DNA of 64,000 nucleotides from Ylistrum balloti (Eukaryota). The translations under genes were made by a program, and so were the position numbers. The DNA is taken from contig NW_026782269.1 in NCBI RefSeq assembly GCF_031769215.1, positions 1,116,001 through 1,180,000 of the forward strand, in the 5' to 3' direction. This document shows, in pieces, positions 9,121 through 53,453 of the stretch; the stretch's first letter is position 1; the number at the start of each line of letters is the position of its first letter. A model generated the notes under the pieces. That model had not been told where the DNA came from, ran no database searches, and saw nothing but the letters and a program-made list of their open reading frames with translations.

Positions 9121-10950
9121 TATACTATATAGAATACGTCCCTGGTAGTATACTATATAGAATACGTCCCTGGTAGTATACTATATTGAATACGTCCCTG
9201 GCTGTATACTATATAGAATACGTCCATGGCTGTATACTATATAGAATACGTCCCTGGCTGTATACTATATAGAATACGTCACTGTCTGTATACTATATAG
9301 AATACGCTCCTGTCTGTATACTATATAGAATACGTCCCTGGCTGTATAGTATATAGAATACATCCTTGGCTGTATACTATATAGAATATGTCCCTGGCTG
9401 TATACTATATAGAATACGTCCCTGGCTGTATACGATATAGAATACGTCCATGGCTGTATATTATATAGAATACGTCCCTGGCTGTATACTGTATAGAATA
9501 CATCCCTGTCTGTATACTATATAGAAAACATCCCTGTCTGTATAGTATATAGAATACGTCCCTGGCTGTATACTATATAGAATACATCCCTGACTGTATA
9601 CTATATAGAATACATCCCTGTCTGTATAGTATATAGAATACATCCTTGGCTGTGTACCAAATAGAATATATCCTTAGCTGTATACTATATAGAATACATC
9701 CTTGGCTGTATACTATATAGAATATGTCCCTGGCTGTATACTATATAGAATACGTTCGTGGCTGTATATTATATAGAATACATCCCTGTCTGTATAGTAT
9801 ATAGAATACATCCTTGGCTGTGTACCAAATAGAATATGTCCTTAGCTGTGTACTATATAGTATACATCCCTGGCTATATACTATATTGAATACGTCCCTG
9901 GCTGTATACTATATAGAATACGCTCCTGTCTGTATAGTATATAGAATACATCTCTGTCTGTATAGTATATAGAATATGTCCTTGATTGTATAGTATATAG
10001 AATACGCCCCTGGCTGTATACTATATAGAATACGTCACTGGCTGTATACTGTATAGAATATATCCCTGTCTGTATACTATATAGAAAACATCTCTGTCTG
10101 TATAGTATATAGAATACGTCCTTGGCTGTATACTATATAGAATACGTCCCTGGTAGTATACTATATAGAATACGTCCCTGGTAGTATACTATATAGAATA
10201 CGCTCCTGTCTGTATAGTGTATAGAATACGTCCTTGACTGTATAGTATATAGAATACGTCCCTGGCTGTATACTATATAGAATACGCTCCTGCCTGTATA
10301 CTATATAGAATACGCTCCTGCCTGTATAGTATATAGAATACGTCCCTGGCTGTATACTATATAGAATACGTCACTGTCTGTATACTATATAGAATACGTC
10401 CCTGGCTGTATACTATATAGAATACGTCCCTGGCTGTATAGTATATAGAATACGTTACTGGGGTATACTATATAGAATACGTCCCTGGCTGTATACTATA
10501 TAGAATATGTCCCTGACTGTATACTATATAGAATACGTCACTGGCTGTATAGTATATAGAATACATCCTTGGCTGTGTACCAAATAGAATATAACCTTAA
10601 CTGTATACTATATAGAATACATCCTTGGCTGTATACTATATAGAATATGTCCCTGGCTGTATACTATATAGAATACGTTCGTGGCTGTATATTATATAGA
10701 ATACATCCCTGTCTGTATAGTATATAGAATACATCCTTGGCTGTGTACCAAATAGAATATATCCTTAGCTGTATACTATATAGTATACATCCCTGGCTAT
10801 ATACTATATTGAATACGTCCCTGGCTGTATACTATAGAATACATCCCTGTCTGAATAGTATATAGAATACGTCCTTGACTGTATAGTATATAGAATACGT
10901 CCCTGGCTGTATACTATATAGAATACGTCCCTGGTTGTTACTTTATAGAA
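9121..10950. repeat. 28-bp minisatellite, ~65 copies
   Basis: Unit tatactatatagaatacgtccctggctg with recurrent variants. Confidence 0.97.
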
Positions 10951-27020: not shown

Positions 27021-30000
27021 TCATACTAGTTGCTTGCCTGTACCAAAGATGATGTACACAATCCAACCAAACAAACACACCCCAGCCGTCTGATTAAACA
27101 CAGCAGCCCAGCTCTTAGTAGCCTCCAGAATGTGACCTGCCATGTACACTCCCACAAAACCTGTACAAAAACCAAATCATAATTCAAGACCACCGCTTAC
27201 AGAAAATTTTTAAAATCATTGATATTATACACATAATTGTCTAATGTCTATGTAATTATACTACAAAGCAATTCCAAGATCACCAATATTATGATTACTT
27301 GATCTTCATACATTACACTGTACACTGTACTATTGTTTCTAGACAATCTCACCTGGTACTGCTCCAGCCATGTTCATAATACCTGAAAAAGACAAAATAC
27401 CTTTCTTATACCTTGTATATACAATACATAGCTGACGTAAGGTTACTTCTACATGCATTATAATATTATTATTGTGAGTGGTAAGATATAGTGTAACAAT
27501 TTCTTAAGTGGTAAGATATTGTGCAACATTTTTTTTATTGATCTATTTTGTGTGGTTATTGTCTAATTTCAGTCTCATTTTCCAAAATTTTGAAACCACA
27601 GAAACTTCAGTAAGAAAAAATTAACTACACCTGTAGATGTTAATTTCATGTCCTGCTCTCAATAGTAGGAAAATGGAAAGTGGAAAGCAAAAACAAATCC
27701 CTCAAATATCAACATTATTATATTGTGCATTTTCTACAGATTTTAAATGTTTAAAGCTATTGCAATCATCCCTCGTTATGATTATCATTTAACCTCAAGG
27801 TTTACCTCCTTTCTACAAGCTTTTTCTATGTGTTTATTCAAAGTATAGATGTGCCACGTCTTCAAAATCATCATACATATTGATTCTTACCAAACACAGC
27901 ACCAGCATGTCTCGGCGCGATATCCTGAGGGTTGACAAGGATGCCACTGTTATGGAAACCACAGCATGCCACCGCTATAGCCATGATAAACAATGCTGAA
28001 TAGTAACTGGTGGTATAGGATATCATCACTAGTGCTGCTGAGGTACCACACAGGGCTATACTCTGTAACACAATAAACAATGGACTGTCTAGTAACAGCG
28101 ATTTTGGAAATCATTGCTGATGCTGCTGAGGTACCATACAGGGTTATACTCTGTAACATGACATCTAACTTGTAACTGGTGGTATATAGGAAATCATATG
28201 TCCCTAACATGAATCAAAGGTCTATATACAGTTATTTATATGAAATAAAATATACCATTTAGTGCGAACATGTACATATAAAATCAGATTCAGGGTTTTC
28301 CATAATTTTTTAAGTAGTAGGCTGTGTAGTGAAAGTAGGAGGCTGGCCTGCCGTGTAGTTGTGTACCGAACATTATTACGGAACTGGATTGGTGTAGGCT
28401 GCCAAATGATCAAAGTAGCCTGTCAAATTGGCCGGCGACCGGCTCTTATGGAAAATCCTGAGATTAACATCTGTTACTTAAAATCAAGTAAAGGGGAATA
28501 ACTCTTTCAGTATACTACTGGTTAATGATTAAACTTACCTCCATGAACTTTCTCACGAATGTCACACTGAAGCCTGTAACAAAAATATCATAATACAGGA
28601 GACACCATGTTTGGGAGATTTACAAAAATGAGACAGGAACTGTATATTTGTTTCATACACTATTGGAAAATTTGGAATTCCCACATTTTACTAAAAGCTT
28701 CAGGTTTTGATGGAATTATATTCCAATGTGTCGTAGAAATTCTCAGCTAATAAATAAATGAACACAAGCAGAATAACTCCACAGACTTAATATCGCAAAT
28801 AGCAGTGTATGTGTACATATGTACTTCCTTATAATGACACACTTTATGAAGAATTTTTGTTTCCTGTTTTATCCAGATCGGTCAATATTTACCTTTGGCC
28901 AACATATGATCTGCAATCCAACCTCCTAGCACTGAACTGAACATGGTCACAATCCATGGCACAACATTAAACACCCATCCCTACAGCAAATTTATAAATC
29001 AATTCAAAATATGATCAATTGATCAATTGTAATTCTTTATCTCACAGCTGATTTTTGTTTGTTTTTATAATTTTTTGTTTGTTTCACATATATTATAAAA
29101 GCAAGGTGATTATCTTTATATTTTTATTCAGACAAAACTAAACATTTTATATAAAAAAAAATTCATACATATCAATCACACAGATTATATTTATATTTTC
29201 ATTAACTTGCCTTCAAAATAAAACACACCAATCCTTGAACTGTACATGTACATTTACGTTGCATAGTAAATAATAATTGTTTAAACGATACGGCCATGTA
29301 TGCCCCCACCCTCTCCCACTAAACGTAAATTTGAATTTTCTGGTGAATGTACTCTGTTCAAGCCTGAAGAAAAAATCAATAAAATAATTTTCTTTTATAA
29401 ACATAAAATATTGCAAAAATCAACTACCATAATAATAGTCTAATAAAGAATATTTACTTTTGAATTAAGTAGTGTATATGGAACTGAAGTTGAAGTAAGG
29501 AATTGTGAAAAGAGAAGTTTCTTTGACTCTATACTTTGAAGAAGTATTTTGATTTAGCTTGCACATACTGGTATTGTTCAAAAGTCTACTCATAGTACTT
29601 AGATCTAATAAGCAATATTCAATTTGATTCAAACAAATTCTTTGCTATGTTTCTCTATACAAAACACTACAGTATTAAGGATCTGTGTGACAAACCAGCA
29701 TAGTGTATTTTGATCTGATTGAAACCATCGGAATCAGTAAATACTTATACCTAGGTATAGATATAAAGTATAGTGTTTTCAAAATTTTCCCAAGTTAGGA
29801 AAAGTAGGAAGGTAGTACTCGTCTGATTAGACAGTGTTTTCATAAATTGTAGTTCATAGTTCTAAAGAATTTGAGATTAATTGTGTGAAGAATATTCAAG
29901 TAACAAGACCTATAACACATCATCAATATCTCTACAACTGTCCCACATCAATTTATAGTACCTAGAGCTGTGTTCTCCTTACAATGTATTTATATAGCAG

Positions 30001-33000
30001 AGTTCCTGAAAACTGGAGTACAAGTTTTGAATTTCCGTGGTTTTGTACTCTCATTTGGCAGTGATGGGGAACACCGAGTAGCTTGTATAAAGCAGCATTT
30101 AAAATTGTAGGTTTATTACAGATTAGAATATATTACAGGTTTCTTAAATACTAAAGAGGTATACCATACATCATTCATAAAACATGCTACATGGTGTGAA
30201 TTAAAGAGAATAAGGCATAAGTCAGTGATAAATCTACAATTCATTTTCACAAGGCCTTTTCAACTTTTACTAATGATTCCTGCGATGTAAAATTTAAGTA
30301 TTTCCAAAAATTCTGTGAGTACAATACTCAGGACTTGCAAGTAGATTGATCACTGAATAAGTGAGAAGGTTAGTTTTTGATTATTGATAACAGATTGTAG
30401 AGCAAATGAATATCAAATACATGAAAAAAAAGACAAAAGGTTTGTATTTCTCAGGAAACTGAGAAATGGACCAGTCTGTATTGTTGTGGTTGTGTCTTTG
30501 GGCAAGCCATTTTACACTGATTTCTCTGCATGACACGTAATGGTTGTCTGTATTTTGTTTAACTACTACAAACAGGCCCTGCCACAAAATGACCATGACT
30601 GTTCCCAGGGTGATAAACCCAGTGGAAGGCGAAAGACAATTAAGACACGTTACTTACAACTATGACAGAAATGTGCAAATTAAGATGAAAGATTGAATCA
30701 AGGAGTAAATTTATTTCAAAACATGGTGTAATTATATATCAAATTGTATGATGAAAAAAATAATGTTCTTTGACAACCATACATGTCAACATTCTTCACT
30801 GATCATTTAGATGATCTAAATATAGATCTGATCTATATTTGGATGGGACCTAAAGTTATGCTTACTTGACACGTTTATGGCATTACAGCAGAAGAAATTT
30901 ATCAAAGAGAAAGTACAATATATGTGATTTATAGAAAGAACTTTGGCAGACATAAGAAACCAGTAAATTCAACTACTAAGAAGTACTTGATAACTTCTGA
31001 TTTTCATAAGGTCATTAGATTCGCAAAATTAGAACCAAACAACACAGCTGATATACAGTATTATCCCATGCAAAAGGATTCAGTAAAACTAAACAAGGTC
31101 TACAGTTAGCATGCCATTACTTTTCATTTCAAGTTTTTTTTTGTCCAGTGAAAACTTTGAAAATAACATTAGATTACACAATGTAGACACATTTGTTTCA
31201 CTTCAATTTAAATCAATGCATGTTGTGTGTGTAGATATTTGGTTATTAGAAATAAACAAACATACTGTTAGACAGTCAGACACTTCAAACTCAAAGTAAT
31301 TAGCAAATCTAGATCTACAGAGAATCTAAAATATCAGGCAATGAGGCACTGATTCCCATCAACCATCTGTCATTTTTACCTTAGCATCAGGGAAATTTTC
31401 ATGAAAATATGTAGGTAACCAGGACAACAGGATAAAAAATGCATTATTTTCACAGAAGTGTCCAATGAGAAGAGACCTGAAAATAGAGAAGGATCATACA
31501 AATGTGAAAATTTCTGTACTTTTACCTTGGCATCAGGAAAGTTTTCATGGAAAAAGGTAGGTAACCATGACAACAGGATATAGAAAGCATTGTTTTCACA
31601 AAAATGGCCAATTAGTAGAGACCTGGAAGAAATTAGACATGAAAATGAGAAGCCATGTTAGCATATCCAACACAATGTAAATCTGTTGGCCTGTGGTGTT
31701 AGCTATCCATGCTTTAGCAATGTCATTATGACTTCATATTTCTTTCCTATTTTACAAAGACTTCAAAATAATCATAAGTCCATTGCCAAAAAAGTCTCTG
31801 ATAAAGCAATGCCGTCTACAAATGTACCTCCATCGGTCTTCTCTCTAATATAACTCTTAAACTAGAACCATCCTCTGGGGGTTAATTCCCACCCCTACAC
31901 CCCCTCTCTGCTGTTTCTGAAAATCGGGAATAGCTCAACCTGGTATAGATTACGCACATCTACAATGTATAAGGATTATAGCTAGCAAATATTGTTTCAA
32001 TTCAGTAGTTTAGGTGGATTGGTCGGTACATTGTTGCATCTACAGACAGATAGACAGTTAGACAATCCAATTCCAGTACGTCCTCCACTCCCCTACCCCT
32101 GGTGGGTCCGTTGGTGGGTATTAAATACATCCATCCTTATTGCTATCACAATTAGTATATACAATACTTAAAAAAAGATGATTGTGTTATCAATTTTATC
32201 AACTAGAGATAAAACCGGGAGAGGTATCATTAACAGAAGACTATAAAGCTAGTAATTCTACATTTTGTTCATCTGGTACCTTTGATTGAGGGAAATTTTC
32301 AATCACATAGGATGGCAACCATGATAACAGTATTTGGAATGCATTCGCACCACAAAAACATGAAAATAGCATAGCCCTGAAATGAAATGAACTTTGTCAT
32401 TTTAAAAATGCTGTTCAATTAAAATAAGATATGTAATACCCAGGCTGTTACCACCATTAAAAAAAATTAAATGACAAAAAATGCAAAAATACTAGACACA
32501 GTCACTACCAAGTGCAGGCACTGTAATTATTTGATATGAGAAAATATTAACATTGCATAAAACAATTTATTTTAATGAGAAATCCTAGTGTGATCTCCGT
32601 TTGATGTTAGACAGATCATCGAAATCTGCTCTTTTCCCCCAACATTTTTTTGTACATCTGAAATTGTTATATATGTAGTAGTGTATTACCCAGTAATCAA
32701 GTGTAGTAACATCTAAAATGACAATAAGTAAAATAGTTTAATGAATTCAAATATCACATTCACACTGGTCATTGGGCTAAAAGCACAATTTGGATACAAA
32801 GGTAACCTGTATTTAACTTTTCCATAAAGTCTCATAATACACCTTTCATTACTTCTTGGGAAATAGCAGTAAAAAAACTTCAAATAAATTGTTCTGCTGG
32901 AAGCCACTTTGAATGTCTGATAATGTTACACATGTAGTAAGCATAACTATGACACATATACAGACTAAGACACATATACAGACTATGTTGATGGAGTTTA

Positions 33001-36000
33001 AAGAAGACATTCTGGCATGGAGAAACAATGCTTATAAACTTAATACATAAAAGTCAAAATTGATAATGTTGATGGAGCTTCAAGAAGATCCAGCAATTCT
33101 GTAATAGCAACAATAAAAACCTTCACATGTCAAAATCTACGACCCAAACATTTCTTTATGCTGATGGACTGACAGACAGATAAACCATTTCATTTTTTTC
33201 TGCATTTTCTTCTCTTTTCTTATTGATTTATTCTGTCTTTTCATTCCACACTTAATTCCTAACTTAACTGATTCATTTCTTTCTTTCCTTTCCTATCCTT
33301 TAAAATTTTTTTGATGGTTCACAGTCTTTTACTGCACGGCCTGTATGAATTGAAATTAAAACAATATTAAGAATCCTTGTCTTCCTTTTTTTTTTGTTCT
33401 AAGTCACAGAATGTATGCCACTATCTCATATTTCATCCTAAGTATTAGAGGGCAAATACTCACCAGAATGCAGGTTTGACAAAGAGTGTAAGCCAAGGTA
33501 CTGACTTCTCTGTCTTGTGGTTGACTTTCTGCCCAATGCCCTCTCCAGCAGATACTAAAGGAATATACTTTTTTCTGTGTTTCTCTATCAATAAATAGCG
33601 CAGAAGTAGCATCCAAGTTATACTACTTAGACCTGAAAAGACATAAATATTTATTTGTTTAAATTAATCCAAATAATTATATACCATTGTACATTTAGTA
33701 AACATCCCATACAGCAGAAAACTAAACTAAGTTTAAGAAATGTGTTTTTCGGAGAGAACTTCACTCTAGACTAGTGCTCTGGGCTACATTATCTGTGGTA
33801 TGAAAAATACTTACGATTTACTAAAAGTTCAGAATAGAATAATTTTATTTACACTAGCTGTATATACTGTATATAACAACTATATTTGCATCTGTTTTAT
33901 TAGTTAACATCAGAATACCATTTACTTCTCAAAATGTTTTTTTAATGCTTCTTCATACTATTCTATGTCATTTTCGTCTGATTTTATCATTTAATTCATA
34001 TTGCTCTTGGATTATTCCATATTGTTTATTGTATGCTTATATGCACAACCATATATAAAAGAAAGTGAGGAATTCCCAGAAGGATATTACAGAATGAAAG
34101 TCAGAATTCTGATGGCAGGATACTTTTTTTTTTCAACAGGCGTAATATTACTAAAAAATTATTGCATCAAAATTTTCCATAGTTTTGTGCAACCAGCAGG
34201 TCACACTATGTCAAAATTCACAAGCCTGGACCATCGGACAAGGTGCTGATTTGTAATGTCATTTAATGGACTTCGGTTTAAGTATTAATTAATGTATGTT
34301 AATAGGTATCTTGGACTGATCCAGTTCACATTGTAGAATAAAAGATAAACATCAATTTAATTCTCATATATCTACTGGATGAAGAAAAATTGTGCAATAT
34401 GGTTATTTATTTTGGGATTTAATGTATCAATTTTAAGTAAGTGCTGATGGCTAGAAAAATTTGACATTGACTTTAAACTTAAGTAATCTGATAAATCTAA
34501 TTTATTATCAATTTATGGATATCTTTAACTCTTGGGAGGAATTAAATATTCCGTTTTCACATACACTTAAGTAATAATATCTCATTTTTCTTTTTTTCTT
34601 TCATTTGGTACACAACAATAATTGAAAAATTGTACTGTAATTGATATTTATTTCATCCAAAATTATTTCTTATGACTGATGTCAACATTCTCTTTCAAGT
34701 CAATTTTGACAAAATCCTTCCACAGTAAAATGGTTTTGTAAGTGTGTGTCATCTTTGTAAACTCACCTGCAAAGTAAAATACACTTTGCCAGCCATATTT
34801 ATCTAAAAGTATAGATCCTATACTGCCACAGAGCAAGGTGCTGCAGAAAGAAAAACAAGTTATAACATTTTCATATAACAGACAGAATAACGATGAAACC
34901 TTCTAACACAGGCCTCAAACATAGCAGTTATTGTCAATAACACTTATCTCTGAAGAAAATAATTCCCTCCATACAACAAATTAAAAGTGTAGCAAAGATA
35001 TTGAATTATATTGAATGTTTAAGTTATCTTTCAGATAAAAACTGTTCTTGAACCAATCAATTTTTCTTTAATGACCATTAATATTTCCCCAATGACCCAT
35101 TAAACATTTCCTATGAATACATTAGCAACAATTCACTCAAAGTTAACATTTATTTTGCAGACTATTTATTATACCAAACTAAACTATGATTATGCCAAAT
35201 GCTCAAAAGTCAGTGGATGTAGTGAAAAAAGCCTAATTGATATATAAAAGAAATGCTAGGGCAAAAGAGGGGAAACCACGTAGCCACAACCAGTCTAGCA
35301 AATATCTAAATATCATTTTATAATGATGATAACTTGTTAATTATTTGACAACCAAATACATACATATTTCATTTAGAAGTAACTTGACCAAAAACATAGG
35401 ATTCTTATCATAATCAGCTGGGGAAAAACAACAAGCAAAACATGTTAACTTTTGTCTGACAAAGAACCAAGCATGTAATAATTGCAAATTAAAGTATAAT
35501 TTTGAAAAAGCCCTTCACATAAATTACAAAATGACTTTTAAATGACCCCATGATCAGGAAACAAAATACTTATCAAAATATTTTTCAAATTTGGAATACA
35601 GGGGTATTTTGTGTTATGTTTGATTCTTAAGTGTAGTATGGATATATCTTTTATGTAAGCACTTTACAGTAGAATGATGTGGCTGAAGAAGAAAAGGGAA
35701 AAAGCGAAAGCAAAATTACCCAAGATGGGATCCTGAGCAGATGAAGCTGTAAGTTAAGGAGCGCTCTTGTTCTGACACTTTCCTTGACACCACGGAGCTC
35801 ATACTAGGATAGTGGAAACCTGACAGGGGAGAAAACTCAATTACTAACTAGTAATATTTGTTTTGAAAAATAAACCATGGTCTGTGATCTGTGTATTATA
35901 GATAATCCACAATGTAGTGAATGTCTGAAGTCCTTTTTCTTCATCTTTGTGACAGTCTTGAGAGAACTAAAATTGTATTTTCAGAAAAACACAATAGCAT

Positions 36001-39000
36001 TACAAATTGTACTGTAACATAGGAAAGTTGTTTTTCATTATTGAAATCAGCTAAATAATGTACTAACAGAATTCCACTTACTTCTGGAGAGATACCACAG
36101 GTTGAATACAATAAAATTGTATTGTATAAAATTGCCAAAAATGTCCTATTTTACAGTACAATTTCATGTTTGATCGATTCTCCCCTGCTAGATTAGATCA
36201 GTCTGACTGATATACAGTGTTGATTTCTGTATTACAGGTGCTGTAAATGAAGGAATACAGAGTTAATATAATATAGAAAACAGTTTTGACCCCTTTTTTT
36301 CGTAAATAATGCTTTGTTTAGAATCCTTTTTTTTTTCAATCTTTATTTTTCAGGATATTAGCAGCTTATGCCAGCCCTTCAATACCAATGACCTAAAAAC
36401 AGTTTCATAACTCTTATACACATTTTCTTTCCAAAACATTTAAAACAGATTTTTTCAAAAAAGAATCACAATGTTAATCAAAGTCAATCAGGATGATGAT
36501 CACTATGAAGTGAAAACACAGAAGTTGACCCTTTCATTATGAAGTCAGAAAACAATACCTGCTCCTCCATACTTTTTAATTGAATTCAACTGACTGAAGG
36601 AACATTACATGTATTAAAGAGCGTTCTGTCTTTGATTTCATAACAAGTAGGATGAACTTCATGCAAACATAAGGGATTTTCCAGCAAAGCCTGTACCTCT
36701 TTGGAATTCAAAAATAATTCCCATATCTTCATGTTTGGTTTCCTGCCAATCAGTGGTGTGTATATCAAGAATTACATGTTAATACTTCTCTGATTCAGTG
36801 TACTATAAAAAAAGCTGAAGTCTGGGGAAGATAGATGCTTTACTGGAATAGTCCTAGGGTAAGATTAAACATTGTAATAGAGTAAACATCTAACAAAATT
36901 CTAAAGAAATAAATGTCACTAAATACAGCATAGATTTACTATAAGTTTCACAATAACTTAATTGTTGATGTGTTGACATAATATCTTCAACGTCACATGA
37001 GAATGATTTTAATGTTATTGTTTACAAAATGCTGTGTATCAAAATAACAAAGTGACAAAGTTTAAATAGATGCTTGGTTTTGATATTATATAGGCAACAT
37101 TCTAACATTTACAGAGTGTATGTCTTCAAGCTGAGTGAAGAGTGTATGACAAGTAAAATATCCATTCATACACCAGGGTATTTAATTACCTATAACAAAC
37201 CATAACTTGGGTGTGACATCTCCTGGGTGTATTTCATTTTCTTAATTCGCAAAGTGGTATCATGATCAAAATCACCAAAATACACAAAAAATCTCTTTTC
37301 AGACCTTTTTTAAAACTTGTCAGTGAGGATAAGAAATGTGCACATATTTCTATACAAAATGCTAGCTATACTAGTTGTGTAAAACTTAACTTTTGATGTT
37401 TTTGTTTAAATCTTGAAGATAAAATCTTATATGTAACACTTCAACTTTTTGAATGATATATAGATAAAAACAAAATTATATTATACTAGATTAAAAGTTA
37501 AAGTTTGATTGTGAAACTTACAATATTCTATAATAGTATATTTTCCACACTAGATACATGTAGTAAACACCCTTATGTCACTATCTGGCCAGCTTAGCAG
37601 ATATAAAACATCTGGCAGCATACTGATGAGATTTTCATGAAGGTTTTGTATATTGCTGTGTTTGATAAAAAAAAACTGCAAACTTTTCCAAAAATCACTA
37701 TGAAATAGTATACATATGTATTCTATGATTACTTTATGGTCACTCTCTGACCAGATGATTACATCAGCTGTATCATATATTTGAAAATAAAAAAGCATCA
37801 TTTTTTCTTATATGTTTCTTTTCTATCTAACTTACAATTAATAAGAAAGGTCAGATATATCACACTAAATTTTTTAATTACAGATGTATTAAAATTTTGA
37901 CAATATCTTCAATTGTTTCAACTTTGCATCAAAAGAAAGTTCTTTTTTTATACATAGAATTTGATTCAATATTTGTAATACAAAAAAAAAATCTTTTACT
38001 TTGAAAGAAGATCAACTACTCCATGAAACTCCTATCTGTAGACACTAATGCATGATCTATTGAATTTTGTATGATAGTGCAACTAAGATGACCAGTTAGT
38101 GGCATTTCAAAGACATTTCAATCTTGTGATGCTGGAGTGTAAAATTATGTCCATTTAAATTCCATCCTTTAAGAAAATAGTATATGCCAGGCAGCTGGCA
38201 CACAGACTCACCCAAGGTATTGGCCTGTGGCGATGAGAGCTGAGTAGAAGGATTTCATCTCAACTGGTATGAATTGACCAACCAGACTGGTCATGCTAGG
38301 CATGTATATACCTAACAATATTGTAACAATATAAACATTTGTTGGTGGTATGTTAATACTAATGTTATAACATATACTTTAGATTAAAAAAATCATGAAA
38401 TGATCAGAAATGAGATGATGTAGTTATCCTTAAACAATTAACAAAGTGTAAAAATTCATACCTAATCTATAATAAAACCAGGAAATATTAGCAATGCCCC
38501 GACTCTTCTCTGATTTATAAATATTGGATCTTAAATGAGTTTTCATTTCATATGTGATTTTGTGAATCAAGTCTTATTAATTCTTTTTTGTGAATCTTCA
38601 CAAGCAAAGTTTAAAACTTTTAAGTGAGTTTCATAAAATCTCACGAAACGAAAACAAATTAAAAATGCTTTTATCACATAACTAAGAAAAGTTACATTTT
38701 GACAGGTTTTAAACTCAAATTGTGAATGATGAAATCAAACTGAAGCAGCCATTTTGTTTGCTTTTTTCAATTCATATAAAAACTAGAAAATGTCTGTAAG
38801 ACATGAATGCCCCCGCCCCCCCATTTGAAATAATAGTGAAAGGTCCAAATGAAGTTGTTAGGTGGTATATACTGATTTGGGACGGGACGGGACGGACATG
38901 GGCAACGCTATATGCCCCCGGCCATAAATGGCGGGGGCATAAATACTGCTGATCCCTGACTGAAACAGACACTAAATCATGCACTGGGGTATATTAAACT

Positions 39001-42000
39001 AGTGACATATGCAAATATATTACATGAGTGAATTCAGTGAATAACAAGCCGATTATGTGATAAAATAACATTTACAATAATGATACCCAGAATAAGGACC
39101 CTGACCTTAATCTTTAACCATAGACTGTGACATGCAATATTGATACATATTCATGTTTAAGATTTTATGGTTGTCTGAAGATGTTGAGTCTTCACCCAGG
39201 GGCATTCAAGTGTAACGTCATTCACAAAAGTTTCATACATGTAACATCAGTCAATATGTAACAAGTTTATATCTTGTTATATTGGAATTTTAACTTCAAC
39301 ATTGATTGTGACCTTGAAAGTTGGCCTATGTGATGTAAATGTGAAAAGCGAAACATAACTACATTACCTGTGGTAATATAAATGTATGCAAAGCTTCTAT
39401 CTACAAATATGAATGAGTTAAGAGTAGGAAAAGAATATGGAAAAAAAGACACAACATTTAGTGATAATGCACATGACATGTAATGTTGGTATCTTAATCT
39501 ATGAAAAAATGAAGGCTGCAACAAGAATCTTCAGGATATATCGCTGCCCTGCCAGCATTTTTCCAGTAAAACATAAGGGCCTTATAAACATGTATGGAAT
39601 GACATTTACTAAAAATCTCTTTACTTAGGTGACAAAATTGAAGCCAGCTGTAATGAAAAACCATGAATGTTGATAATGTCAAAAGTATACTGTTAATGTT
39701 TCACCATACCAGTAAAACCTGGTAAATCTGAACACTTACTAGTCCTGTAAAGATACAAGCAATAGGAAGCACACAATTCAATGCAAAAAAAAATAGGAGG
39801 AAATGAAGTTACCAATAGATTACTGTCATTTTAGACAACAGGTGTTATATTTTCTAACTAAATTAATGTTGCCTCCCTGCAAGCATTCTAACCATCAGCT
39901 TGATATAACATCTGTTACCCTCAACATCAGTCAATAGCTGCCTTTTGAATTTGAAAAAAAAAAATCCACTGCCAAAGAATCCTTCAGTGGTCTTATCACA
40001 TGTACATTTTTGATGTAATCAAAAAATTTTCCAATTGAAAAATAACACAAATACAATCCTGACTGAATTCATTCTTATCTATATAGTTTATACATAAAAT
40101 TACTAAACCCCAATCAATTATTACCTTGAAATATCCCAAGGAACACTCTTGAGACAACAAGTATGTGCAGCGTGAGGTACTTGTCAGTGGACAGATAGGC
40201 TAGCTGTGGTGTCCAGAAGGTGATCATGGACCAGAAACAGGCAGCAATGGGCATGACCACATCACCGCCCACCTTATCAGCCAGGTAGCCTCCCAGGAAC
40301 TGTGTCATTGTGTACCCCCAGAAAAAGCATGACAGTACTGAGCCCTGTAAGCAATTTAAACAAAATCAAACTGACATACTTATATGTGTTTTATCCATAT
40401 TTCATTACCATCTAATACATCAAAGTATTCTACAGTTTAAAAATAAACAATATTTGATTTAGTATGCCAAAACATCTATAAAAGCCACACCTCAAAACTT
40501 TTTTAAAGTTGTTTGTCTTTAAGACATATCATAAAGTCCTCATCAGATCATATATTAAATACCTGGCAGAATGATAAAAGAAATAAACAAATGTTCAATC
40601 ACTTATTGGCTTTAAACTAATTACTCTTTGTAGTATGGGACATAAAAGTTTTCTTAATCATTAAGTGTTCTTCATTTTTTTCTCTTGACATTGGAAACAA
40701 CTTCTCTTTCTTTCAAAAGGTCTCAACCCACAATTGAAGAGAATTGCTGATAAAACATTGCTGTAATTGCTTATACATACTATGGGATGAAAACATTTCA
40801 ACATCTTTTTAATGTTACAATTTAAAGATTTTTGTAATATACAAGTAACGTTACATACGCTCTGTGTTTTGTCCCAGCCAAATTCCTTGGCCATGGAAGC
40901 AACAACCAAAGGTGTGACTGTCCGACAAGCATAGAGGACCCCACAACCAGCAAACAGTCCTGTGGCCCATTGCTTTCTTTCTGTCCTGTGTAAACAGAAA
41001 AAAAATATTCACATTAATAGCTAATTAGTGTTCACTAATCCAATTTCATATGATAAACTAATTGTAAGACTGCAGACAACAATTTTTAGCTTCTTTTAAT
41101 TTTTGCTCCTGTCTAGAATTTCATGATATTTAGCACCTTAAAACTATCTAAAAGCACTCAACATTTGAAAAAAAGGTGTAACAACACAATCATAGCTTTA
41201 AAATATTGATGTTTTCTCTGAATGGAATAACTATTTCATGGAAGTAACACTGAATGGAATCAACTATTTGAGGGAAGTAACTCTGCTTAAATTTAAGTAA
41301 AATCTATTCTTAAAATAAGGGTGGACATTCCAAAGAATGGTAAAACAAGTGCTTGTACAAATAATGTACTCAGTGTTAAGAGATGACATGATACATCAGC
41401 ATTGATCACTAACCATCTCATTACAGGTTTTAACTATTCTATTAACAAAGAAATGTCCTAAAAGCCATTTTAATTGTCCTAAGTATGGTATTTTTTCTCC
41501 TATTGGCTAACAGCAATTTTCACTGTTCACTACATAAATCATGTCTGCTCTTATACATTTATAATTTTCAGTTTCTCTCGAATGAGTACATGATCTATTG
41601 TTAGTGATCAAGTGATGGTTACACATTCCAAATGAATATTAGTTAAAAAAAGTATAAAAGGCAGTCCTAACATAATGTTTTGCTGGCTATTGAAGCTGCC
41701 ATATGGGGACAGACTGCAAAATTCTACTGAATCTTTTATGCTTCTATGTTTCTACCTCTAGATCCTAGTCCTATATCATAAGACGTCGCTGATCAGCCTA
41801 TTACCTGATGTTATTGACTCTATTTATAGCTTAGAATTTCATGACAACTATGTGTACTTACGGTTTATCTATACAAATCCTCAAATCATTATGATATAGA
41901 ATCTAAACAATCATTTTCCATAAAAGAGACTCCCAACTACAGTCAATGGTTGTGTTGATCAGGCATTAAAATATGGTGGCTTACAAAAATCAATCGAGTC

Positions 42001-42930
42001 AACTATACATAGCAAATAGTAACAACAACTGGAAAGAAAATTCAGTATTATTTCCGATCTGCATACTTGCATATCATTTTCATATCATCCTTTCCGTATC
42101 GTTACTGGGGAGACCTAGTGTTGATGTTTCATCAGCTTTACATTGGAAGATGAATTAGAATAATTTATTTATTCATTTTTCGGGGTTTTATTTTGTCATA
42201 AATTTGTGGTAAGAAGTAATTACTTGAACCCGTTTCATCATTCAAATCTATATGAAAACGTTGTGTATTATCAAAATCTTAACTTGGAAAATGTGACTGT
42301 CGGCATGAGGAGGTTAATTACACGTGGTCGGTGCCTGTCTTAAGTTTCTTGTTGTGTACCCAAGATCCTTAACTTTAGAGATTTTGAATGTACTGTCATT
42401 GTCAATAGAGGACTGATTGCGGCGTTACTGATCGCCTTGGGGTTTATGTTATCCTCCGAAAACTCAATGCTTTAATTTACTTCGTTTCTGAGCGAATCAT
42501 AATGTTCAACAAATCCTTCTAAGTCTCGTTAAATCATTTTCTGTTGTAGGGTGTCATTCTAGGGGTGTCTGACTTTGACGGTGTTATCGAAATAAGAATC
42601 TGATTCTATGAAATGACAGTATTGGTTTATATCGTTAAAAAGATTAATCTATCAACTACCATCGAGACATTCGATCAGTCTCGCCTTAAAATTAAAAAGC
42701 GCAAATTACTTTCAGGTATCGTTGGGTCACAACGCAATCAATGGAGCAGGACATTTATGACAGCTACTGCCTAAAAACGGAAAAAGACAACTCACAGTAT
42801 GTCTGAAACTTCGAAAGAGATAAATATATGTGTACCTATTCCAATATTTCCTATCCAGTCCCTTCACATCGTCTGTATCACTGATAGGAACTTTTATCTG
42901 CTTGTAGACGTCATCATCACGCTTCGCCAT
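27021..42930 (-). CDS. SLC17A9: SLC17A9 / vesicular nucleotide transporter (VNUT)-like MFS transporter, 448 aa. Exons 42930-42836, 40985-40859, 40344-40125, 35819-35720, 34840-34767, 33632-33464, [31622-31526 OR 31476-31380], 28980-28893, 28573-28539, 28062-27891, 27382-27353, 27160-27021
   Basis: All introns are GT-AG and the phases are continuous (1347 nt including stop). Motifs GSVLSCFFWGYTMTQFLGGYLADKVGG, GFHYPSMSS, FILLSWLPTFFHENFPDAKGWVFNVVPW, FHNSGILVNPQDIAPRHAGAVFGIMNMAGA and TKSWAAVF match SLC17A9 (human ILLSWLPTFFEETFPDAKGWIFNVVPW, NHSGISVNIQDLAP). Confidence 0.93.
31380..31476 (-). CDS. SLC17A9: SLC17A9 alternative exon 7B (97 nt)
   Basis: tttcag|G...AAG|gtaaaa; encodes SLLIGHFCENNAFFILLSWLPTYFHENFPDAK. 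Confidence 0.9.
31526..31622 (-). CDS. SLC17A9: SLC17A9 alternative exon 7A (97 nt)
   Basis: ttccag|G...AAG|gtaaaa; encodes SLLIGHFCENNAFYILLSWLPTFFHENFPDAK. Confidence 0.9.
38781..38943. mobile_element. Short non-autonomous Helentron/DINE-like element in an SLC17A9 intron
   Basis: Subterminal atgcccccg motif near the 5' end, (GACGG)n microsatellite, and terminal stem-loop tatgcccccg-gccataaatgg-cgggggcata (38911-38941). Confidence 0.7.
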
Positions 42931-49400: not shown

Positions 49401-51496
49401 ATAAACAGAAATTCTCTGTTAAATATAGAATTTTGTTTGTTTAAAGTTGATCCACCAACTCTTAAACTAAATAAGAAACAATTAAAATAACAAGACTTTG
49501 CTGTATGTACATGATATACACTGTCTTATATAATGCTATTTTTGTATAAACATCTCCAACATTAAAAAAATGCCAAGAAACAAGACCAAGGAACAATTGA
49601 AAGTGAACAACACGTCCTTTTGGTATATCATAACAACACAGTGACATATCTATGTGCATACCTGTAGTACATAGTCCTTTCAAAATAGTACTGGATCATA
49701 TAGCAGAGAAAATTATTAGCTTACCTTGACAACACCAAATACACAATCTTTAGATACGTGGTATTCTTTCCATATCTGTAATAGAATAATCATTGTTAAA
49801 ACAATTGGAACTTTTCATTTAGACAAAGAAGATATATTCTGTATAGCCAGCATGTTCTCTCTCTAAATCAAGTAAAAAAATAAAATAAAAATACAAAACA
49901 AAAACAAAACAATACACAGACACAAAAAGCAATTTGATATGAAATTGTGATAATGCATTTTTTTTAACTCATTTCCTTTATATTACAAATGTATACTAAT
50001 ATCAATTTTTGTTATCTAAATACCATCACTGAAATAAATTATAAACCTGAGAATTAACCATCAGTATTACAAACCACTGATGTCTGTCATATTCTTAGAT
50101 TCCATACATAATTTGTATATCTTGATGTTTAAAAATTATACATTACATGTTCAATTTGTTCTGGGGTTCTGTCCTTTAGTAGGTCCACCTTCATGATTTC
50201 ATGTAAACTCTAGATAAAAAAAAATCTTTGTAAAGACAGCAAAAATAGTTTGTGGCATTGCATTCAATAGATTGTAGACACACATTCTATAACTGAATCC
50301 ACATTTTTGAATATCCACAATTATGATCTACTTGATAAACTATTTTTTTAATGGGATTTTAAAGAATTTCTTCTATTTCCACTATTAGTCCCTGTTTCTC
50401 CCACACTAGGGGGCCAAGACACACAGTTTAAACAAAATTCATACCCCTGCAACCAATGATGCTTCAGACTAAATTTGAGCAAAATCAAACAATTCCTGAA
50501 ACAGGAGTAACGTTTTAATGAACTTGCAAAATTTCCCCTTTTTGGCCTCACCTCTCAGGCCCTGGGCATTTCTGCATGAATTACATTACCTCACAATTAT
50601 TGGCATTAGAGCAATTAAAGAAGACAACTCATCATCATGCATTTCATAGTTCCCTTCATATTAAATTGAAATGACCTTGAGGAAGTTGTCATCAACACAT
50701 GTTCCAAAATCATTGCTGGTGAAAATGAATTATTTTGATATCATTATTAGACTTACTTTAGGTGGCCAGCTGCCAGGGATGGCCCCTTTCTGTGATCCAC
50801 TTTCAGGATTTTCAGGATCTACAGGAGGTGGGGCTAAGTCTTTCCTCAATTGTTCAAGCTCAGCTTGCTTTGTTGCCTCCATTTCGTCCAGTTTGGCTTG
50901 GAATTCTTCAGGAGCTTCACTGCAATACATGTCATATTCTTTTACATATTGAAGTAGTTTAATTTCATATAACTTTTTCTCTTTTAGAAATAAAATAGGT
51001 ATCATTGGAAAGCAACAATTTCAGCAGCTGACTCTTCAATTTCAAAGTATCAACATCCCAACCTTGTTATCATAATAATTGACTAAAACCAGCTTCAAGA
51101 ATAATCATATTTTCTTTTATTCATTTTTGTCTGAAAAATCATTAAAACAAATTGTTATCATTGTTTAAATAATAGTAACCTTTGTTTTTGCTTTAGCTTC
51201 TGCTTATACTTTTCAAAGAATGCATTCTGCTCCAAATCAAATGTCTTAGGTGATTGTTTTGGTGCACTTTCACTGCTATACCGTCGCACTACAGGTGCTT
51301 TGGGTAACCCTGCTAAGTCCATCATTGTTGGCCATCTTAAACCACATGAAGGTGAACAGGTCAGCGTTGGTATGGATCTGCTTTTGGAGACAAGGCTACT
51401 AGAGATGTGACGATTTGGAAGACGTGACCAACAGGACAGACACACACGTAACAAATTAACCTGAGGCATTACTCCTGTGTCAATGCTGTAGTTCAT
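46454..51496 (-). CDS. ATPAF1: ATP synthase mitochondrial F1 complex assembly factor 1 (ATP11 family), 330-339 aa. Coding exons 51496(or 51469)-51180, 50919-50757, 50209-50147, 49775-49725, 49234-49187, 48135-48040, 47745-47679, 47222-47182, 46627-46454
   Basis: GT-AG introns with continuous phase (1020 nt from ATG 51496). Segments LEQNAFFEKYKQKL, SEAPEEFQAKL, SLHEIMKVDLLKDRTPEQIEHIWKEYH, KARVCPVFVYPLPRQDGFEFILSQF, EKGIVLM and LVRLFNHMPEKFHYQEII match human ATPAF1. The N-terminus is Arg/Ser-rich like a mitochondrial presequence. The start codon is uncertain. Confidence 0.92.
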
Positions 51497-53453
51497 CAGA
51501 GTCCCCGCTAACACATGAAGGCAATCTTTCTGTAGGATCTATCAAAAAATTATGAGAGTCATTTTCAGATTTCATAATCCTGCAGGCACAAATTGCACGA
51601 GTCTGACATAAAACATATAAAAATAAAAAGTATTACCGGTATCTTAAATACCTTGACTTTCTCTACAAGAATCATAGTATAGAATGTGCACATCCCAGGA
51701 AAAAGTTGAGCTTTGATGACTTCTTTCCTGGAGATGGAGTGCACATGTGTAACTCCAGTAAAATATCTACTGCATAAGCTTCATACATGTATTACTAAGC
51801 TAGAAGTCATGGGTTCAATCCATTACGAGAACACTTAAAAAATCAAATTATCTCCCTCAATCAGTAATATTCCTTATAACATTTCATGCTTCACAAATAA
51901 AGACAGAAGAATCCATATTTTAGCTTGCATTGTCTGAACATAGGTTTTACAGTGATTTTGTCTAGCATCATCAAATAAACTATTGATCTATATGGAAATG
52001 TCTATACCCAGATGATTAGATTTACCTAAAAATGTTACATTCCATTTAAAAAAAAGGGTAAATTTGTTTATTGTGAAATATCCATTATGTTTCATCAATG
52101 AATTTATGTACTTTTTCTAAGTACATATATATCAATATTCTTGTTACTGAATTTAACAAATTATCAATAAATCCATCTTGAATGCTAAATGCATGTCATA
52201 TTGCCTGTCAAATGAATGAAATGTCCATGAATGATTAGACCTTTTTCTTTACAGAAGCCCAAACATGCAATTTGAAATTTTTAAAATTTTCAATAATTTT
52301 TTATGACACATTTCTGCTCTTGAATTAACTAGCAAATTGTTAATATTGAAAGGATGAAATCAAAGCTTTATTTAAACATTTTATAATAAGTTTGTATATG
52401 AAAAAAAAAAAAAAAATACACAAACAAAAAATTATTATAGTTTTACCATGTAATTATACTTTTAAGATGTGTACTTTGAACCGTTATCTAAAATTCTTAT
52501 GTAAATGTCATTTTACTTTTAACATGACTCTAGATTCTCTGTGACTCAAAAACATCACTACGACATGGAAGGGTAGACACTGGACCCAAACATGTGTCAA
52601 AGAATTTCAGTAAGGAAGTCAGTATTTAACAGAAAATACTGATATTTACAAATAGTTTACTGAACACATTTCATTAAAGGCACATATTTCAATAAGTTAC
52701 ACAAGTACACTTCTTTGGGCAAATTTTGATCACAAGCACATAGATCACTGATTTAAAAGGAAATAATATTTTTTTTAAATATCAAACTTTTGGCTTTCTA
52801 TGTCAAAACTAAAAGGTCAGTTCTTCTTAAGTAAGAAAACATGTCTTCAAAACAGAAGTTCGTCCCAAAATTGAATATCTCTCATTACTCAACAGCTATC
52901 GTATTCACTGTAATATACAGTTTACTTCATCGTACTCGCTACAGAAGCAAACGTCTATTTCGATAGTAAGTATTTGAGTTAATAATAAGTAATTGCATAA
53001 AAAATTGTCTCTTACACTTAGAGAATAAAATTCATTGTATGGCAAGCCAGACTGAAAAAATAAATAGGCAATGATATCAATATAGAAAGGAAAGGACATG
53101 CGGTTCAATTACATGAGACAACAGTTCAAGTCAATGTAATAACCAAATATTAGATTTGGGTCCGAAACTGATGTACGTGAATTTGAAAAAAAATGTGAGT
53201 GGATCAATTTGGTGGTGCGAAGAGATGTGCCGCAGGCTGTGTAAGTTCAATTAAGAAATGACAATAAGAAATGTAGAATGCAACCATTAAATTGTTAATA
53301 CTTACAGTAATTAGTTGTAGGTCGGTGCAGCAGTAAGTCTGCCACAAGTAGAAAGCATGTACCCGAAAATTCTGTCCTTGTGACTTAAGCGCTTGAATCA
53401 TATGTGTGAAACCATCGAAGAAAGTAAGGGCCTAAGTGACGATGATATTAAAG

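Follow-up and report, generated by a model that had tools for sequence, protein, structure and literature searches.

A probable pair of mutually exclusive exons moves a tyrosine within transmembrane helix 7 of a scallop SLC17A9-like transporter

Tandem-duplicated exons that are spliced in a mutually exclusive manner are rare, and the isoforms that have been studied are often tissue-specific and functionally important (PMC9741552). A distance of about 50 nucleotides (nt) between donor site and branch point has been proposed in vertebrates as the steric limit for the simultaneous assembly of U1 and U2, and the size of the intron between exons 4a and 4b of OGDH has long been conserved (PMC7969005). 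A human-centred survey describes tandem exon substitutions as enriched in ion transport proteins and as convergent in several phyla. Here, a stretch of 64,000 nt from the scallop Ylistrum balloti (contig NW_026782269.1, positions 1,116,001 to 1,180,000; hereafter the window) was analyzed. It carries a gene for an SLC17A9-like transporter (VNUT, vesicular nucleotide transporter) with two adjacent homologous exons, 7A and 7B. An earlier note on the same DNA had taken these for mutually exclusive exons. They are indeed probably mutually exclusive exons that arose by tandem duplication and give two VNUT isoforms, in which a tyrosine of transmembrane helix 7 (TM7) is repositioned.

Exons 7A (31526..31622, minus strand, as are all features below) and 7B (31380..31476) are both 97 nt long, with a pyrimidine tract and cag immediately upstream and gtaaaa immediately downstream, and both are entered in phase 2 and left in phase 0. 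They are identical at 81 of 97 nt and at 30 of 32 residues. The 16 base differences consist of 14 synonymous changes in third position and two changes in second position, TAT/TTT at codon 14 and TTT/TAT at codon 23, which together form a reciprocal Tyr/Phe swap. Exon 7A encodes NAFY..PTFF, with Tyr at residue 276 and Phe at residue 285 of the product, and exon 7B encodes NAFF..PTYF, with Phe at 276 and Tyr at 285, which is the commonest state among homologues. The positions, AG/GT sites and phases given in the earlier note were all confirmed, and its count of silent changes and its two-residue swap held base by base. That so few residues differ is not due to chance: among 20,000 random sets, each of 15 substitutions, not one had two or fewer amino-acid changes. 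The pair was also picked up independently by a repeat finder (family D1, 84%). The intron between the two exons (31477..31525, 49 nt) contains the two candidate branch points noted before, TTCAC and ATGAT, with the adenosines at +21 and +32 from the 7A donor.

Contigs from an independent DNA run differ from the window by about 1%. One of them, 3.5 kb long, covers positions 28850-31973 with both 7A and 7B, and another covers 31947-33657 with a third copy termed 7z. As the first contig spans both exons and the same layout is found in three other scallop genomes, the pair is not an assembly artefact; the absence of the second copy from raw reads, which had been raised as a check, is thereby refuted. 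Two further contigs of low depth, at window positions 31492 and 31579, match part of 7B or 7A and then continue into unrelated sequence. They may come from a paralogous locus, from structural variation or from chimeric assembly.

The gene extends over 27021..42930 and has 15 exon positions. The assembled model is open from ATG to TGA over 448 codons, given one exon 4 and one exon 7, and encodes a product of 448 residues. Exon 7 is flanked by the constitutive exons 6 (33464..33632), the donor of which at 33464 leaves TG of a Trp codon, and 8 (28893..28980), with its acceptor at 28980; both junctions had been placed correctly in the earlier note. When 7A and 7B are joined in this model, a stop is met at residue 303, nine codons into 7B, and when neither is used, a stop is met at residue 273, so that the predicted early termination of both products was borne out. 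The claim that exactly one of the two exons must be used stands in so far as the frame demands one exon 7. It overlooked the third candidate copy, 7z (32280..32376), which is presented further below.

The product is a transporter of the SLC17A9 type within the SLC17 family and the MFS (major facilitator superfamily), as judged from its sequence, and is predicted to transport ATP. The 448-residue model is 94.4% identical to the A. irradians protein XP_069126561 across its full length and 76% identical to a protein of Saccostrea cucullata. Exon 3 by itself matches Pfam MFS_1 and sialin, and the 94%-identical A. irradians orthologue matches MFS_1 with an expectation value (E) of 2.7e-51; the single 32-residue exon 7 peptides gave no Pfam match, being too short. 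The closest solved relatives are sialin (E 9e-47) and VGLUT2 (E 7e-39), over residues 64-445. Full-length relatives were reached by a profile search from a mixed alignment, the exon 3 query alone having returned mostly fragments. The molluscan relatives carry the RefSeq name 'voltage-gated purine nucleotide uniporter SLC17A9-like', and the named top matches in molluscs, annelids, arthropods, amphioxus and echinoderms are SLC17A9 or SLC17A9-like, the other top matches being unnamed. The full-length match, the Pfam domain and the named relatives thus agree with the assignment to SLC17A9 made previously.

The locus was compared with those of the scallops Argopecten irradians (L001), Pecten maximus (L002) and Mizuhopecten yessoensis (L003), the oyster C. 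gigas (L004), the clam R. philippinarum (L005) and the periwinkle L. saxatilis (L006). In the three other scallops, 7A is followed by 7B, each of 97 nt with AG/GT sites, and the intron between them measures 51, 51 and 63 nt, respectively. Across scallop species, 7A exons differ from one another by 4-9 nt and 7B exons by 1-4 nt, versus 13-18 nt between 7A and 7B in the four scallops; either type differs from the single oyster exon 7 by 11-16 nt. In a maximum-likelihood tree, the 7A sequences form one group (64% bootstrap) and the 7B sequences another (84%), the support being moderate because the alignment has 97 columns only. The Y..F state of 7A and the F..Y state of 7B are invariant in the four pectinid genera, and, apart from one Ile/Val position, neither exon type varies in its residues.

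Comparison of 7A with 7B gave a nonsynonymous divergence (dN) of 0.027, a synonymous divergence (dS) of 2.2 and a dN/dS ratio of 0.012. Together with the orthologous pairs in four genera, this ratio indicates that both exons are under strong purifying selection, as had been proposed. Only small islands of the window's introns can be aligned with the introns of the other scallops, so the constitutive exons were used as a yardstick in place of an intron-wide neutral rate: pooled, they gave a dS of about 0.55 for the window against P. maximus (range 0.22-0.87). The corresponding values in 7A and 7B, 0.17-0.23, are lower. Low synonymous divergence is usual in regulated exons.

The earlier note had suggested a search for a conserved doublet in other molluscs. 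The doublet is present in the three further scallops, but the loci of C. gigas, R. philippinarum and L. saxatilis contain a single exon 7 and no second copy. Among the species sampled, the 7A/7B duplication is seen only in scallops. As it is shared by four scallops, and the oyster, the clam and the periwinkle have one exon 7, the duplication is placed on the scallop lineage, ahead of the divergence of the four genera. An origin older than the split between scallops and oysters was considered and is unsupported, given the single exon 7 of these three species and the oyster's flanking introns, in which there is no room for a second copy.

In the mechanism proposed, a tandem exon duplication would have produced 7A and 7B, and each mRNA would take one of them. 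With an intron of 49-63 nt, any branch point would lie less than 50 nt from the 7A donor, and the 7A donor and the 7B acceptor could then not be paired, by steric exclusion. Products that contain both exons or neither would be frameshifted and presumably cleared by nonsense-mediated decay (NMD). At 49 nt, the 7A-7B intron is much shorter than any other in the gene, of which the smallest has 192 nt. Its size is kept in the four genera while the neighboring introns vary by kilobases and no longer align, which fits selection for a short intron. At 49, 51, 51 and 63 nt, the introns agree with a branch point within about 50 nt of the upstream donor, although this threshold was derived from vertebrates and may not hold in molluscs. 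We infer steric exclusion at 7A/7B from this agreement. When docking and selector structures were sought at the exon 7 cluster, only AT-rich chance inverted repeats were found, and upstream of 7A there is no island conserved in all four scallops.

Alignment to human sialin places the segment encoded by exon 7 in TM7, with residue 276 at the position of Tyr306 and residue 285 at that of Tyr315, in agreement with the earlier description of this helix as lining the cavity. In sialin, Tyr306 lines the putative substrate pocket (PMC9858498). It stacks on Phe116 and so closes the luminal side, and the Y306A substitution lowers transport (PMC11116495). The 7A isoform has a hydroxyl at the pocket position 276, the 7B isoform lacks it and has one at 285 instead, and the two are otherwise identical over 448 residues. 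Because residue 276 aligns with a residue of the pocket and luminal gate of sialin, gating or the handling of substrate may be modestly different in the two isoforms.

Isoforms of this kind are already present in databases. The 90% cluster of the A. irradians protein holds RefSeq pairs, X1 and X2, for three scallops: XP_069126561/62 in A. irradians, XP_033737750/52 in P. maximus and XP_021361983/84 in M. yessoensis. Within each species, X1 and X2 are equal in length and differ by only 2-3 residues, both swap positions among them. The isoforms with the 7A state are P0270, P0269 and P0273, and those with the 7B state P0151, P0271 and P0272. These pairs resemble the window in the gene, the exon pair, the reciprocal FF..TYF / FY..TFF swap and the tandem arrangement of the genomic exons; unlike the window model, none includes 7z or the alternative exon 4a described below. 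The event is thus annotated in RefSeq, presumably from transcript evidence. A full-text literature search returned no paper that links SLC17A9 with mutually exclusive splicing, and SLC17 is not mentioned in the main text of the survey of human tandem exon substitutions. The previous statement that no such pair had been described for SLC17A9 is therefore right for the literature searched, but the RefSeq isoforms of three scallops already show the pair. What the locus presents is a well-conserved case of a known splicing mechanism and not a new kind. Reading frame, orthology in four genera and the equal-length gene models of the other species concur with two isoforms that differ by a moved Tyr, and mutual exclusivity is predicted on these three grounds.

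Several observations weigh against this reading. The RefSeq scallop isoforms are computed gene models. Many invertebrates splice introns of 50-65 nt, and the steric block may fail in scallops, above all with the 63-nt intron of Mizuhopecten. At positions 276 and 285, the states found among 165 homologues are F..Y in 94, Y..Y in 34, Y..F in 11 and F..F in 10, and the sole exon 7 of Littorina encodes the exact 7A peptide; the difference between the two proteins may therefore be functionally slight, and is more likely a fine adjustment of the transporter than a switch. With Phe at both positions in 10 homologues, the idea that one of the two must always be Tyr was rejected.

The splicing of short introns in many invertebrates bears on a possible, if doubtful, account in which exclusivity is enforced after splicing only. 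The 49-nt intron would then be spliceable, the wrong products would be degraded by NMD, and this degradation may tune expression. The early stops that follow from double inclusion and from double skipping are as expected from such an account. So is the 657-nt intron between 7z and 7A, which is too long to act sterically, so that the reading frame must do the work there. Against it stands the 7A-7B intron, the length of which has stayed within 49-63 nt across the four genera, whereas the other introns have shifted by hundreds to thousands of bases. Such conservation is a prediction of the steric mechanism.

The variety of residue states raises another alternative, which is unlikely: the exons would be used exclusively, but the swap would be neutral, and the pair would be kept by divided splicing regulation, tissue- or stage-specific, as a subfunctionalization at the exon level. 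Both positions switch freely between Phe and Tyr among homologues, F..F included; a 7A-type peptide is used alone in Littorina, and oysters carry Y..Y. The low synonymous divergence of 7A and 7B also suggests a constraint at the RNA level. A neutral swap is harder to reconcile with diagnostic residues that are invariant in four genera despite a dS of about 0.55 between the window and P. maximus, as one base change would erase either of them, or with the alignment of residue 276 to a residue of the pocket and gate at which alanine impairs transport. That one of the exons is a dead duplicate or an artefact of assembly is highly improbable, considering that splice sites, length and frame are intact in both exons in four genera with conservative Ile/Val variation only, that dN/dS is 0.012, that an independent DNA contig spans both, and that the decayed 7z of Argopecten displays the contrasting look of a dead copy.

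Exon 7z is a candidate third alternative exon of 97 nt, bounded by cag and gtacca, with the same phase and an open frame. It was found both by the repeat finder (family D1, 66%; member 32274-32382) and by tblastn, and 14 of its 32 residues differ from those of 7A. It is intact in P. maximus (L002:14944-15040), with differences of 12 nt and 7 residues from the window (dN 0.114, dS 0.228), and is more conserved between the two species than the surrounding intron, which does not align. The A. irradians copy (L001:~10567-10680) has decayed and carries a stop and 17 additional nt, while none was found in the M. yessoensis locus. Exon 7z is in no annotated isoform of the RefSeq scallop set. Either it is a third variant of minor use, or it is a copy in slow decay.

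A second cluster of alternative exons was found at the position of exon 4. Exon 4b (35720..35819) is the canonical exon for TM4, with an ERS motif, and exon 4a (38212..38311) is a divergent alternative; each is 100 nt long. In the window, 23 of 32 residues differ between them (23-25 when other molluscs are included). As for 7A and 7B, the choice is enforced by the frame, early stops resulting in the gene model when both exons or neither are used. The exon 4 cluster is much older, however: each of the seven mollusc loci examined contains the pair. In C. gigas, Ruditapes, Mercenaria and Littorina, it is precisely this block that distinguishes the RefSeq isoforms X1 and X2, X2 being of the 4a type, and the cluster therefore predates the split between bivalves and gastropods. 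Exon 4a, which the scallop gene models leave out, has a dN of 0.055 and a dS of 0.375 when the window is compared with P. maximus, values that point to purifying selection. TM4 aligns with the sialin segment that holds Phe179 and His183, and with exon 4 encoding TM4 and exon 7 encoding TM7, both clusters exchange cavity-lining helices. In Branchiostoma, SLC17A9 proteins (P0226 versus P0242 and P0251) also differ in the block equivalent to exon 4, of 34 versus 33 residues, a difference suggestive of an alternative exon at this position too, whether independent in origin or older.

The mechanism at exon 4 is not steric, since the two exons lie 2.4 kb apart. An intronic island of 17 nt, AATCTAGCAGGGGAGAA (36178..36194), is identical in the four scallops, at a distance of 341-382 nt upstream of 4b, while the remainder of that intron cannot be aligned. 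It contains a 10-nt core, CAGGGGAGAA, which is the exact complement of TTCTCCCCTG (35824..35833) in the polypyrimidine tract of the 4b acceptor. The predicted duplex has an energy of about -27 kcal/mol, versus -16 to -19 kcal/mol for shuffled introns. The stem formed by these two arms may mask the 4b acceptor and is a candidate regulator in scallops; the invariance of both arms leaves no covariation by which to test it. The clam has another element, of 11 nt and close to its 4a donor, that complements the clam's own 4b acceptor, to an extent that is not significant compared with shuffles.

With the older exon 4 pair and possibly a third exon 7 variant in the gene, a total of up to 4-6 isoforms is conceivable. 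Taken together, the two clusters allow a broader proposal, which is tentative and rather unlikely to hold as a whole. The gene would be a combinatorial cassette gene with exclusive clusters for TM4 (4a/4b) and TM7 (7A/7B, plus 7z in the lineage of Pecten and the window), giving 4-6 isoforms with different gating or substrate properties. A sterically blocked mini-intron would act at exon 7, and a conserved long-range RNA stem masking the 4b acceptor would act at exon 4.

The gene model further includes a micro-exon of 35 nt (28573-28539) and a small exon of 30 nt (27382-27353). A partial tandem duplicate of exon 9 (28063..28156) copies its acceptor and first 47 nt or so, and would be out of frame if used. 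Similar partial duplicates are found in P. maximus (L002:21038-21225) and M. yessoensis (L003:19760-19831), but not in A. irradians; they sit just upstream of the real exon 9 and are out of frame or bear a stop. Upstream of the transporter gene, open reading frames at 50733-51538 were guessed to encode ATP11 and gave no Pfam match for it. ATP11 adjoins the transporter gene in the oyster locus.

Across four scallop genera, selection has kept just two residues apart between 7A and 7B. The two exons constitute a minimal natural mutant pair for the role of the Tyr306 equivalent in SLC17 transporters, and particularly in the less understood vesicular ATP transporter. The conserved intron of 49-63 nt offers a simple test in molluscs of the donor-to-branch-point limit proposed for vertebrates. 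For annotation, scallop gene models miss exon 4a and possibly 7z. In other respects the pair is an ordinary instance of a well-known mechanism.

Duplicated exons that are alternatively spliced to give two forms are found in other molluscan genes, namely those for the oyster alternative oxidase (PMC5589949) and coq-2 (PMC7434440). These resemble 7A/7B in that respect, and concern genes and folds other than SLC17A9. The human tandem exon substitutions of the survey are alike in that homologous exons of the same length swap a transmembrane segment. Unlike the surveyed human cases, the exon 7 event is seen in scallops only in our sample, and its two versions differ by only two residues. Closest in arrangement are exons 2 and 3 of alpha-tropomyosin and exons 4a and 4b of OGDH, which are likewise homologous and adjacent, with a branch point within the threshold of about 50 nt. 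Both have a longer intron, with a branch point unusually far from the acceptor, whereas in 7A/7B the whole intron measures 49-63 nt and the branch points are candidates.

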